Position numbers and translations under genes: made by a program. A stretch of 62,878 nucleotides of DNA, counting the filler, from Octopus bimaculoides (Eukaryota): the NCBI RefSeq assembly GCF_001194135.2. It is 5 parts of 5 records of this genome, joined end to end, with 100 filler letters (N's around TTAATTAATTAA, not from the genome) between each part and the next. Parts side by side here need not be neighbours in the genome. Positions count along the whole stretch, not along the records: positions 23,978 to 41,337 come from NC_068990.1; 4 more parts are not named here. One strand, given 5' to 3'. Numbering within the stretch: the stretch's first letter is position 1; every line of letters begins with the position of its first letter. Under the pieces are notes generated by a model. It made no database searches. It had not been told where the DNA came from and was given only the letters and a program-made list of their open reading frames with translations. Positions 24,158 through 25,507 of the stretch are shown piece after piece.

Positions 24158-25507
24158 TCACACACTGGTTACTTTGGCTAAGCTGGTTGGACTTTCGATA
24201 CTCCTTCTGGCCGCAGTTCCCGTCTCAACAGAGCGCGTTTGTCGTAATGGACCAATTGGTAGTTCGGAAGTCTTTAAAGCCACAGGTACACTCTGACGCC
24301 TGGACAGCGAGTGTGGAGGCATAGATTTCTCCATCGGGGACAGTTGCTTTTCTCCTCCCTTCAACATCCCTGGTGGCTGCTCTTCAGCCATTTCGGTAAT
24401 TATTGTTGGAATATTTGGGAAACGCATATCTTTCGTTTCTGATATCTCAGATTTTTCTGATTTTTCTGACCTGTCTTCTTCTTGCGGTGTATGTGGAACG
24501 AGATTCGCATCCATAGACCTCGTCGCGTGTCTGACTACTTGCGAGCAAACCTCCTTTGTTTCGATGGGAATTACAGATTCCTTCGACTCAAGTGAGGTAG
24601 ACTGCGTCTGCTTCATATGCTCCCTCGCACTATCCAACTTCACGTCGTGGTCTATGGGGTGGGACTCGAGCAGAATTCTTTGATTTCGCCAACGAATACT
24701 TTGCAATATGCCAATAGTTGTAATTTCTATATGGTACGTTATTTTACGGTCACCCGCCGTGACTTCAATAATGGATACGTTACAATCAGCGAACACATCA
24801 CTGAGATCTGTAATCATAACTATTCCTTGAATTTCCATATCTTTCTTTCGCCTTATGGTTACTGGAGCTTCCCCCGACGGCATTCGAAGTGTTGAGCGTA
24901 CTTCAAAGTCTGCAACCATTTCATCTTCGGTTAACATAATCTTTGCTTCTGTTAGATAGTTTGGTTCGACCACAACGTCACTATCTGTCTCCCAGATATA
25001 AGTCTCTTCAATTGTTTCGCCAGGAGGTCTGGTTACAGTCAACTGACCGCTTAAACCGGCGCTAACACCGCAATCAGAATATTTTTCTGGAAGCTGAAGT
25101 TTCAGATAGAGATTGGTGCAACAACCAACCATATAACCACGTTGACAAGTAATCGTAGTCGTTGCTTTAGTATGTCTTTGCGTCTTCAACTTATAAGATT
25201 GCTCTTTCTGTGTGTTGTTTCTAAAGTTGGTCGAAAAAAGAACCACCTGTTTCTGCTCTCGAAGGCCACTGGCCAGCTTCGAACGGGGAGTGAACTTGAC
25301 CGTACGATGATAAATTTCGAAGAAACTCCATGGTATGTCAATGATGAAATCGCTCCGGCGGACAAAGATACCTTGGATGCAACACACATCCCGGGTGAAC
25401 TCTTTCCAGACGTAGTCCTGAATAAGTTTCTGGATGTCAATGACAGGGCCATAGTCGACCGCCGGGTCAGATCGTTTCCTTCTTGGACATAGCATGCCTA
25501 TTTTCAT
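24158..25507 (-). CDS. Aerolysin/ETX-MTX2-fold beta-pore-forming-like protein (LIN-24-like), 449 aa, single coding exon
   Basis: Only long, non-repetitive, uninterrupted ORF in the window. First in-frame ATG is 25507 (in-frame TGA upstream at 25570-25568; the track's GTG start at 25558 is unlikely). Motif series LFSTNFRNNTQKEQSYKLKTQRHTKATTTIT-x-GYMVG...LYLKLQLP...GVSAGLSGQLTVT...ETIEETYIWETDSDVVVEP...EAKIMLTE...DFEV fits the ETX/MTX2 pattern FxNxTxxEQ..T.T.T....G...hairpin...TW....V.VPP...A. N-terminal IDIQKLIQDYVWKEF resembles LIN-24-like proteins. Confidence 0.85.
   Translation of the reverse strand: MKIGMLCPRRKRSDPAVDYGPVIDIQKLIQDYVWKEFTRDVCCIQGIFVRRSDFIIDIPWSFFEIYHRTVKFTPRSKLASGLREQKQVVLFSTNFRNNTQKEQSYKLKTQRHTKATTTITCQRGYMVGCCTNLYLKLQLPEKYSDCGVSAGLSGQLTVTRPPGETIEETYIWETDSDVVVEPNYLTEAKIMLTEDEMVADFEVRSTLRMPSGEAPVTIRRKKDMEIQGIVMITDLSDVFADCNVSIIEVTAGDRKITYHIEITTIGILQSIRWRNQRILLESHPIDHDVKLDSAREHMKQTQSTSLESKESVIPIETKEVCSQVVRHATRSMDANLVPHTPQEEDRSEKSEKSEISETKDMRFPNIPTIITEMAEEQPPGMLKGGEKQLSPMEKSMPPHSLSRRQSVPVALKTSELPIGPLRQTRSVETGTAARRSIESPTSLAKVTSV

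Follow-up and report, generated by a model that had tools for sequence, protein, structure and literature searches.

LOC106868423 of Octopus bimaculoides is a real, intact, and strongly conserved gene. Structural modeling supports an aerolysin/ETX-MTX2 fold for its product, and terminal sequence motifs kept among molluscan relatives suggest that this fold is used inside the cell. We consider it fairly probable that this single-coding-exon, mollusc-wide gene encodes an aerolysin-like protein that is tethered by lipid and scaffold to the cytoplasmic face of a membrane.

The gene and its repeat-rich surroundings

Within the window, that is, the whole 62,878-nucleotide stretch of DNA analyzed, the minus-strand ORF extends over positions 24158-25507, with ATG at 25507, TGA at 24160-24158, and 449 codons plus stop; a GTG-started extension reaches 25558. 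The features of the gene structure and its neighborhood are as follows.

24158..25507, minus strand: complete CDS and single coding exon of O. bimaculoides LOC106868423 (449 aa plus TGA)
25633..25661, minus strand: probable 3' splice acceptor (polypyrimidine tract plus AG) of a 5'UTR intron, read from the sequence
24161..24163, minus strand: GTG (Val449) as alternative 5' splice donor, AGT/GTGTGA, from RefSeq isoform X2
~29036-29574, plus strand: frameshifted mariner transposase relic (Pfam Transposase_1, E 5.8e-9)

Over its entire length, the ORF product is 100% identical to RefSeq XP_014769338.1 ("uncharacterized LOC106868423"), and the RefSeq protein differs from it solely at the C-terminus of the spliced isoform. 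We found no paper in the literature mentioning LOC106868423 or XP_014769338. Given that stops occur locally at 0.071 per codon, a stop-free frame of 449 codons would arise with P ~4e-15 per start and ~1.5e-10 across the whole piece, and with P ~1e-10 the ORF is not a chance product. The next-longest N-free ORFs are microsatellite-derived and reach at most 140 aa. The GC content is 0.44-0.45 in the ORF, whereas most of the 15 kb that follow are at 0.26-0.38. Microsatellites and a dispersed SINE-like repeat surround the gene, and the mariner relic comes from a Pfam scan of the neighborhood that took in mariner fragments only. A preliminary description of this DNA had reported an uninterrupted frame, less AT-rich than its flanks, amid decayed coding relics, and our analysis agrees with it in these respects.

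The repeat-rich setting, and nothing more, would suit an ORF that arose by chance or a pseudogene in decay, to which we assign next to no probability in view of the chance estimate, the RefSeq annotation, and a pN far below pS. Moreover, a related contig has AATAAA and then poly(A) at its end, suggestive of an mRNA.

The gene had also been described as intronless. This holds for the CDS, which is uninterrupted, but probably not for the gene as a whole. The acceptor-like signal at 25633-25661 is located 125 nt upstream of the ATG, and the coding exon would probably begin at 25632; comparable signals precede the ATG by 6-125 nt in chiton, Patella, and three Logan loci. At the other end, isoform X2 (P0001) terminates in KVTS-SHHSFSIVQNINS instead of KVTSV, the last residue being swapped for 13. 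No coding sequence for the peptide SHHSFSIVQNINS was found within the piece, so that the Val449 codon would contain a GT donor. Together, a 5'UTR intron and alternative 3' splicing are likely features of LOC106868423.

Modeled fold and putative insertion hairpin

Searches with the single octopus sequence were of low sensitivity for the fold, whereas family-level and structural comparisons returned it. The relevant features are listed below.

24638..25450, minus strand: predicted aerolysin/ETX-MTX2-fold core, aa ~20-290, with a helical head and two elongated beta-sandwich domains (AF2, Foldseek, profile)
25199..25225, minus strand: F-x-N-x-T-x-x-E-Q signature, aa 95-103, the ETX/MTX2 family motif
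25013..25144, minus strand: putative membrane-insertion (pre-stem) hairpin, aa ~122-165, QRGYMVGCCTNLYLKLQLPEKYSDCGVSAGLSGQLTVT, with alternating polar and apolar residues

In the single-sequence scan, Pfam ETX_MTX2 (PF03318) matched the octopus protein with E 0.0019 and 18.5 bits, under the gathering score of 22, and no additional Pfam domains were found. PDB phmmer with the single sequence returned noise only (MRPL1, VioE, and Rio2, E>0.3), and the NCBIfam search of the octopus protein yielded nothing but a far-sub-threshold VioE match; the VioE matches, to aa 7-86, were taken as chance at these scores. The Pfam check proposed in the preliminary description was thus sub-threshold for the octopus protein itself, whereas 35 of 60 homologs matched ETX_MTX2 (best 5.9e-11) and a precomputed PF03318 match exists for the chiton ortholog. 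Searched against the PDB, the family profile matched Cry51Aa1 (5e-9), the natterin-like protein Dln1 (4e-6), and Cry23Aa1 (1e-4); in a word-indexed homolog search, the profile of 60 sequences retrieved 5 proteins.

The AlphaFold (AF2) model displays the elongated three-domain beta fold, with pLDDT mostly >90 in the core and 209 residues at >=90. Foldseek with this model matched Cry23Aa1 (1.4e-12), Cry51Aa (3e-11), parasporin-2 (2e-9), epsilon toxin (1e-8), and aerolysin (5e-7). Against the PDB there were 38 matches at E<=1e-3, and all among the matches listed are aerolysin-family chains, the top ones of ETX/MTX2 type. The alignments cover 274-305 columns versus toxins of 249-308 aa, and the target-normalized TM-scores are modest (0.44-0.55), as expected because the folds are elongated and hinged. 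Profile and structural comparison therefore both point to the fold originally proposed for this protein.

The motif series of the earlier proposal was likewise recovered in full: the signature F95-R-N97-N-T99-Q-K-E102-Q103 is followed by TKATTTIT, then a stretch of amphipathic character (~122-165), and finally IWETDSDVVVEP. Across 60 homologs, N97 never varies and Q103 is conserved to >=90%, and in the profile alignment the signature aligns with LTNNTDLQQS of Cry51Aa1. N-x-T 97-99 was dropped as evidence of an N-glycosylation sequon, the identical motif being present in bacterial Cry51. The Thr-rich TKATTTIT precedes the alternating NLYLKLQL ... GVSAGLSGQLTVT, a pattern kept in the family alignments A2 and A3, and AF2 places the hairpin as a lower-confidence loop or hairpin joining the long strands 103-126 and 163-180. 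By sequence pattern alone, the segment is an amphipathic hairpin with Ser/Thr-rich flanking strands, as in membrane-insertion elements, and may insert into membranes; by analogy with its toxin relatives, the octopus protein might form pores.

Alternatively, the protein might be a domesticated aerolysin-fold member that lost pore formation and became a pure membrane or scaffold adaptor. The octopus hairpin carries unusual Cys residues (GCC, DC), and the motifs and PDZ ligand of the tail, together with strong conservation of the whole surface, would suit many fixed partners. Yet the amphipathic hairpin and flanking Thr-rich strand are kept across the family, with no sign of insertion-element loss in the sequence, and we regard this alternative as quite unlikely.

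The elongated three-domain fold is common to the octopus protein, Cry23Aa1, Cry51Aa1/2, Cry45/2D42, and parasporin-2 of Bacillus thuringiensis, and the Clostridium perfringens epsilon toxin. These B. thuringiensis ETX/MTX2-type toxins and epsilon toxin also share with it the F/L-x-N-x-T-x-x-Q signature, the Thr-rich strand, and the amphipathic hairpin, at an identity of only 12-15%. As secreted or crystal protoxins, the bacterial proteins act on target cells from outside; in contrast, the octopus protein lacks an export signal and possesses a Cys motif at its N-terminus and a disordered tail of 160 aa that ends in a PDZ ligand. With the two-lobed aerolysin and biomphalysin it shares the pore-forming module (Foldseek 5e-7 to aerolysin) but not the lectin-like or small-lobe receptor domain. 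The lack of a lectin domain had been anticipated; the accompanying statement that only the pore module is present did not stand, considering the whole three-domain body with its helical head and the tail of 160 aa.

Predicted targeting signals at both termini

Outside the core, conservation is concentrated in the following elements.

25472..25495, minus strand: M5-L-C7-P-R-R-K-R, Met-Leu-Cys plus a basic cluster, candidate S-acylation site or membrane anchor (conservation)
24161..24637, minus strand: predicted disordered C-terminal tail, aa 291-449, rich in Ser/Thr/Pro/Glu/Lys (pLDDT <50)
24521..24571, minus strand: tail motif 1, aa 313-329, IPIETKEVCSQVVRHAT, conserved, predicted helix at 317-329 (AF2)
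24392..24427, minus strand: tail motif 2, aa 361-372, MRFPNIPTIITE, a conserved short linear motif
24161..24172, minus strand: C-terminal V-T-S-V, predicted class I PDZ-binding motif (conservation, APC identity)

Inspection of N-termini revealed no hydrophobic h-region of a signal peptide in the octopus protein or in 145 of 148 relatives; the N-terminus resembles a signal peptide in only 3 of the 148. Instead, N-termini of the MLCxC, MxCC, or MGCCxS type were found among the relatives. A Cys within residues 2-10 is present in 59/148 members versus 15% expected, and 31/148 have at least two. The myristoylation consensus is matched by eight members starting with MG, and 7 of these carry a Cys in residues 3-8. 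The octopus N-terminus contains a single invariant Cys (C7, or C3 from an M5 start) and the RRKR cluster, and both M5 and C7 are invariant in the long-tailed members (n=16). M5 may be the true start; because there are two candidate start Mets, the distance of the Cys from the N-terminus is uncertain. These patterns would fit N-terminal lipidation and an intracellular location of the octopus protein. Hydralysin, LSL, betagamma-CAT, and Dln1 are signal-peptide-less aerolysin-like proteins of animals or fungi thought to be released nonclassically; since export of such proteins is assumed, a missing signal peptide alone is no proof of an intracellular role.

In the tail, I313, P314, K318, S322, H327, A328, and T329 of motif 1 and R362, F363, and I366-E372 of motif 2 are invariant in 4 orthologs, and motif 2 was also found in the chiton, scallop, and unionid proteins. 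A motif scan identified RRQS, a site of the basophilic-kinase type. Two further candidates were set aside: PTIITE as a PxIxIT calcineurin site, which has Thr instead of a hydrophobic residue at position 5, and the caspase-like IDHD at the core/tail junction, which is not conserved in the 84-86% homolog.

The protein ends in a free [S/T]-x-hydrophobic C-terminus kept in orthologs. The -KVTSV end is common to the octopus, chiton, scallop X2, and unionid proteins and to P0003, P0004, and P0008, with -KMTSV in Patella and -TTTV or -STTV in gastropods. Unlike the remainder of the tail, T447 is conserved to >=90%. Ends of the [ST]x[VIL] type occur in 14 of 151 family members (12 long-tailed, the other 2 short proteins). 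The last four octopus residues, VTSV, equal the C-terminal peptide of human APC, which binds PDZ1/2 of DLG1 and was crystallized with DLG1 PDZ domains (PMC3157396). The octopus protein may likewise bind PDZ domains, and RefSeq isoform X2 loses the ligand through splicing at Val449.

Evolution of the family and its possible roles

The octopus, chiton, scallop, and unionid proteins form an orthogroup with a bootstrap of 198/200, and thus the gene is neither a cephalopod-specific family member nor a cephalopod acquisition. Relatives named through cluster look-ups are nearly all molluscan, the sole exception being a protein of the nematode Trichinella, matched by the octopus query with E 1.7e-11; two metagenome relatives sit on gene-sparse contigs. 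From these sequence relationships, the family appears to be ancient, mollusc-wide, and vertically inherited, and a very old acquisition, preceding the molluscan radiation, is conceivable.

The uninterrupted CDS, its GC content above that of the flanks, and the repeats all round could be read as signs of a recent retrocopy or a bacterium-to-cephalopod horizontal transfer into repeat-rich DNA; in the preliminary description, the intronless CDS had been taken to fit an old retrocopy or a horizontally acquired gene. However, orthologs that are 40-47% identical, carry the same motifs at both termini, and have single-exon CDSs were found in chiton, bivalves, and gastropods, and the CDSs of a chiton paralog and the Patella homolog are also single-exon. 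The probable 5'UTR intron and alternative 3' splicing do not fit such an origin, either. No close bacterial relative was detected in NCBIfam or among the best 150 of 1.84 billion representatives, which are molluscan or nematode wherever named, and exons richer in GC than AT-rich intergenic DNA are ordinary. We therefore rate a recent origin of this kind as very improbable.

Purifying selection on the core is very strong (pN 0.026, pS 0.85, saturated, between two cephalopod sequences), in agreement with the earlier view of a selected gene. Estimation of dS was possible for the tail versus L003 alone, and only pN and pS are given for other pairs because their synonymous sites are saturated; versus the 84-86% homolog, the dN/dS of the tail is ~0.09.

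These data bear on the suggestion that the protein is a secreted or unconventionally released beta-pore-forming toxin of cephalopod immunity or venom, resembling biomphalysin or acting as proposed for the glabralysins. Its fold, Thr-rich segment, and amphipathic hairpin match those of lytic toxins, and export is thought to occur for some aerolysin-like proteins devoid of a signal peptide. Toxin and immune genes are expected to evolve fast and diversify, but the octopus core is near-invariant between two cephalopods despite saturated synonymous sites, and the tree is that of an apparently single ortholog per lineage, not of an expanded toxin family. Neither the signal peptide nor the accessory lectin or receptor lobe of secreted animal aerolysin-like toxins is present, 145/148 relatives likewise have no signal peptide, and the conserved PDZ ligand and acylation-type N-terminal motifs have no extracellular role. 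We consider such a toxin unlikely, and the analogy to immunity and venom proteins drawn in the preliminary description is weakened accordingly. Biomphalysin, a secreted protein, is considered a product of horizontal transfer, whereas the octopus family tracks mollusc phylogeny.

The glabralysins of Biomphalaria glabrata have a single ETX/MTX2 lobe modeled on Cry23/Cry45 and 3-4 introns, are discussed as immune effectors, and fall into a tree that broadly tracks species phylogeny and includes a cephalopod cluster (PMC7016736). Compared by description, they differ from the octopus protein in that an acylation motif at the N-terminus, a tail, and a PDZ ligand go unmentioned; our family contains two Biomphalaria relatives, P0017 and P0058, not identified as glabralysins. 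The best precedent for a cell-intrinsic role, again compared by description, is LIN-24 of Caenorhabditis elegans, an endogenous aerolysin-like protein of ~270 aa, gain-of-function alleles of which kill the cells concerned (PMC12945463). It is short, whereas the octopus protein has a long tail.

To our knowledge, neither a PDZ ligand nor a lipid anchor has been reported for LIN-24, and no aerolysin-family protein is known to insert from the cytoplasmic side. Gasdermins are cytosolic, form beta-barrel pores by insertion from the cytoplasmic leaflet, are restrained by their C-terminal region, and in some cases need S-palmitoylation; they offer a functional analogy only, their fold being unrelated to that of the octopus protein.

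In the reading that we favor, a protein at the cytoplasmic membrane face, the N-terminus would be tethered to the inner leaflet via S-acylation and the C-terminal -KVTSV would dock on a MAGUK-type (Dlg/PSD-95) PDZ scaffold. Such double attachment would keep the aerolysin-like body at a defined membrane site, e.g., a junction or synapse, where it might act as a regulated oligomeric pore or channel, comparable to LIN-24 or gasdermins, or as a nonlytic membrane-binding module. The disordered tail of ~160 residues would probably be phospho-regulated, and splicing to isoform X2 would strip the PDZ ligand. More tentatively, it is possible that molluscs, and perhaps other protostomes, possess a conserved class of cytoplasmic-side aerolysin-fold proteins, N-terminally lipid anchored, docked via a VTSV-type ligand to Dlg/PSD-95 scaffolds of junctions or synapses, and splice-switchable, constituting a gasdermin-like pore counterpart or a scaffold-bound channel.

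Aerolysin-like proteins of animals are nearly always treated as toxins that were acquired from bacteria and are secreted for immunity, venom, or digestion. The octopus orthogroup suggests another use of the fold, ancient, vertically inherited, extremely constrained, and equipped with cytoplasmic membrane-scaffold targeting signals. Were the protein an ordinary exported lysin, LOC106868423 would merely be another uncharacterized mollusc ETX/MTX2 gene. If the cytoplasmic reading is true, it would provide a tractable model for the domestication of a lytic toxin fold to cell-intrinsic functions, aid in interpreting nematode LIN-24, and add a component to MAGUK-organized membrane sites in animals with large nervous systems.

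Reading frame, transcripts and surroundings

The piece from NC_068990.1 (23978-41337) contains a single long open reading frame. As had been described, it runs uninterrupted for 449 codons, is less AT-rich than its flanks and carries the claimed motif series, the sole correction being the strand. The features of the gene are as follows.

25507-24158, minus strand: ORF, ATG at 25507, TGA at 24160-24158, 449 codons plus stop
25661-25633, minus strand: AG-terminated polypyrimidine tract, 29 nt, 125 nt upstream of the ATG
25609-25623, minus strand: upstream ORF of four codons (ATG GCT CAG TGG TAA), located after the predicted acceptor (25633) and ahead of the main ATG, within the putative 5' leader

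GC content over the ORF is 0.44-0.45, compared with 0.26-0.38 across most of the other 15 kb. Stop codons occur locally at 0.071 per codon, so the probability that 449 consecutive codons lack one is ~4e-15 for a given start and ~1.5e-10 when both strands of the piece are considered. A chance ORF or a pseudogene is next to inconceivable. The remaining N-free ORFs, all translations of microsatellites, reach at most 140 aa, and those spanning N runs, e.g., 40124-41194, were rejected as artefacts of assembly gaps. The motif series comprises F95-x-N97-x-T99-x-x-E102-Q103, the Thr-rich TKATTTIT, a polar/apolar alternation at ~122-165 and IWETDSDVVVEP; among 60 homologues, N97 is invariant and Q103 nearly so.

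Over its entire length, the translated ORF matches O. bimaculoides XP_014769338.1 (uncharacterized protein LOC106868423 isoform X2, 461 aa) at 100% identity. That isoform differs at the C-terminus alone, ending ...KVTS-SHHSFSIVQNINS instead of ...KVTSV. Since the 13 X2-specific residues are encoded nowhere in the piece, X2 must splice at the GT of the GTG codon for Val449 (AGT/GTGTGA, with the slash at the junction), joining an exon beyond 23978. Acceptor-like signals comparable to that at 25633, likely the 3' splice acceptor of a 5' leader, are also present ahead of the start codon at the genomic loci of chiton and Patella and on three Logan contigs. Thus, the term "intronless" used in the preliminary description holds for the coding sequence and most probably not for the gene, which likely adds a non-coding 5' exon and, optionally, a 3' exon to the coding one. 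Chiton, Patella, Haliotis, and cephalopod sequences share a conserved in-frame M-[KR]-x-x-M-[LI]-C, making both M1 and M5 candidate translation starts.

No other intact gene was found in the remaining 15.7 kb of the piece, in agreement with the decay reported for the neighbouring coding relics. The surroundings comprise the following.

29036-29574, plus strand: decayed mariner-type transposase, two overlapping stop-free frames ('...WWNGINVF...NRTINSDVYCEEM...', matching Pfam Transposase_1 at E 5.8e-9, and '...HRDNVRLH...SDFHLFQSLQHSL...'), its pieces split by frameshifts
32695-32862, 32913-33078, 33525-33588, 35509-35572, 38538-38704, 38768-38927, plus strand: six copies of a dispersed ~165-nt repeat
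26233-26292, 26735-26781, 27560-27609, 28107-28282, 32039-32203, 34272-34571, 37566-37674: dense microsatellites of the types (AC)n, (TA)n, (TATC)n, (ACT)n, (TAA)42, (TCAA)n, and (TG)n
~27610-27619, ~35850-35890, ~40240-40620: assembly gaps (N runs)

The ~165-nt repeat, which starts AGTCGATTACATCGACCCCAGT...CAACTGGTACTTAATTTATCGACCCCGAAAGGATGAAAG and whose copies are 66-86% identical to the reference copy over a 64-nt part, probably represents a family of SINE-like elements; ARAGORN detected no tRNA genes in the piece. Two arrays 3 kb apart, (AC)60 at 34452-34571 and (TG)54 at 37566-37674, score as a 120-nt inverted repeat, most likely incidentally.

Fold of the core

The octopus protein almost certainly belongs by fold to the aerolysin/ETX-MTX2 superfamily, and we consider this assignment of its core solid. 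Alone, it matched Pfam ETX_MTX2 below threshold (E 0.0019; 18.5 bits, where the gathering score is 22), and phmmer of the single sequence against the PDB found nothing. Exhaustive phmmer over 1.84 billion representatives yielded 260 relatives at E<=1e-3, 97 of them at E<=1e-10; among 60 aligned relatives, Pfam detected ETX_MTX2 in 35 (best 5.9e-11) and Aerolysin in 3. The profile of this alignment, and an AlphaFold2 model built with it, gave the matches below.

PDB matches of the 60-sequence profile and, by Foldseek, of the AlphaFold2 model
Profile: Cry51Aa1, E 5e-9; natterin-like Dln1, E 4e-6; Cry23Aa1, E 1e-4; Laetiporus haemolytic lectin, E 1e-4; SaroL-1, E 2e-4
Foldseek: Cry23Aa1, E 1.4e-12; Cry51Aa2/Aa1, E 3-6e-11; 2D42 crystal protein, E 2e-10; parasporin-2, E 2e-9; epsilon toxin, E 1e-8; aerolysin, E 5e-7; Dln1, E 9e-7

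The model is confident over the core (209 residues with pLDDT >=90; aa ~20-290 mostly >90), with a lower-confidence segment at ~125-160 between two long strands and a disordered tail (aa 300-449, pLDDT <50) save for a short helix at 317-329. Foldseek alignments of 274-305 columns span the entire length of the 249-308-aa toxins, implying that the core has a helical head domain and two beta-sandwich domains. With the 160-residue tail in addition, this contradicts the earlier notion of a pore module only. A weak but recurring resemblance of the head domain (aa 7-86; 25267-25489, minus strand) to the violacein enzyme VioE was far sub-cut-off (Pfam E 0.17; PDB 2zf3 E 0.37; TIGR03650 E 0.021) and was judged to be chance. 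Nearest by fold is the single-lobed type of Cry23, Cry51, parasporin-2, and epsilon toxin. Among animal proteins, its closest counterparts by description are glabralysins and LIN-24. Two features that define secreted animal aerolysins, the lectin lobe and the signal peptide, are absent here.

Distribution, origin and constraint

All relatives with a named source, save those from Trichinella, are from molluscs, and every one is annotated as uncharacterised: the chiton Liolophura sinensis; the scallops Pecten, Mizuhopecten, Argopecten, and Ylistrum; the unionids Potamilus and Sinanodonta; and, among other bivalves and gastropods, Pinctada, Haliotis, Patella, Biomphalaria, Batillaria, Babylonia, Lymnaea, Physella, Pomacea, and Candidula. 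Gene models of Trichinella spp. (P0089 cluster, KRZ12360.1 and others) show that the family extends to nematodes; there, the ETX/MTX2-like domain (aa 877-1147) forms a fusion with an ERCC-6/RAD54-like protein, probably through a merged gene prediction.

In a neighbour-joining tree of core columns (200 bootstraps), the octopus protein paired with the 84-86% identical homologue in 200/200 replicates, and this pair nested with chiton, scallop, and unionid proteins and the homologues P0003 and P0008 in 198/200. The gene is thus very probably an ancient mollusc-wide orthologue and not the cephalopod-specific member proposed before. Coding sequences are likewise single-exon in the chiton orthologue (L004 3001-4368), in a chiton paralogue (L006 2001-2912), and in a Patella homologue (L005 2001-3359), so that the uninterrupted frame is a family trait older than the molluscan classes and no sign of a recent gain in cephalopods. 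Because, moreover, no close bacterial relative was seen, the best bacterial matches being Cry proteins at 12-15% identity, recent horizontal transfer or retrocopying is highly improbable. An NCBIfam search with the octopus protein returned nothing, and two metagenome-derived relatives sit on gene-sparse, eukaryote-like contigs. The gene may be a very old acquisition; the glabralysin paper, whose tree already had a cephalopod cluster, takes a similar view of mollusc ETX/MTX2 gene origin (PMC7016736).

Compared with the 84-86% identical homologue on the Logan contig L003 (from SRR25158137), the core (273 codons) has saturated synonymous sites (pS 0.85) and a non-synonymous divergence of only 0.026; in the tail, pN is 0.167 and dN/dS ~0.09. 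The gene is under very strong purifying selection, a pattern not expected of venom or immune effectors. AATAAA and a poly(A) run at the end of L003 (1-2192), which includes a 546-nt 3' region, suggest derivation from mRNA, in which case a related species would, indirectly, be seen to express the gene.

Terminal signals and proposed mechanism

The preliminary description had not noted the candidate targeting features that follow. A signal-peptide-like hydrophobic N-terminus occurs in only 3 of 148 family representatives. Together with the near-invariant core, this weakens the analogy to immunity and venom drawn in the preliminary description and makes an exported lysin rather unlikely. Cys within residues 2-10 was found in 59/148, against 15% expected from composition, and at least two Cys in that stretch in 31/148 (MLCxC, MACCL, MFGCCL, MSCCGS, MCCCF, and others). 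Eight members start with MG and fit the N-myristoylation consensus, seven with adjacent Cys (MGCCWS, MGLCSS, MGCCHG, MGCCCS, MGACCT, MGQCLS, and MGTCRS), a pattern classically linked to dual acylation in Src-family kinases and G-alpha subunits. M5 and C7 (octopus numbering) are invariant across 16 long-tailed members, and the octopus N-terminus, MKIG-MLCPRRKR, is similar to that of GAP-43 (MLCCMRRTK), which is palmitoylated and basic.

The 160-residue, predicted disordered tail carries two conserved linear motifs, IPxxxK(E/D)(V/I)xS(Q/R)V(V/L)xHAT, forming the predicted helix 317-329, and (M/L)RF(P/N)xIPTIITE; a motif scan also revealed RRQS, a basophilic-kinase-type site. The C-terminus -KVTSV is common to octopus, chiton, scallop isoform X2, unionid, and the homologues P0003, P0004, and P0008, while Patella ends in -KMTSV and several gastropods have -TTTV/-STTV; conservation of T447 is 90% or higher, unlike that of the surrounding tail. 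By its sequence, -VTSV is a class I PDZ ligand motif, as is the -RVTKL ending of the L003 protein, and PDZ binding is predicted with some confidence. PDZ interactions and N-terminal acylation are both cytoplasmic-side events. The octopus C-terminus is identical in its last four residues to human APC, whose VTSV binds PDZ1 and PDZ2 of DLG1 and was crystallised with them (PMC3157396).

The gene was already annotated and mollusc ETX/MTX2 genes have been described; our literature search found no paper that mentions LOC106868423 or describes an aerolysin-like protein with a lipid-anchor/PDZ-ligand architecture. It is fairly probable that the octopus protein is intracellular and tethered to membrane or scaffold, most plausibly as a peripheral protein of the cytoplasmic face. 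S-acylation of its N-terminus and docking of its C-terminus on a MAGUK-type scaffold would hold the aerolysin-like body at a defined membrane domain, and isoform X2 would free it from the scaffold. A non-pore adaptor is unlikely, as the Thr-rich strand and the amphipathic hairpin are both kept, which suggests that the protein can still oligomerise and insert. Actual pore formation is a tentative proposal, with functional precedents in C. elegans LIN-24 (PMC12945463) and in the unrelated gasdermins; if it occurs, oligomerisation and insertion of the tethered protein would yield a regulated endogenous pore or channel.
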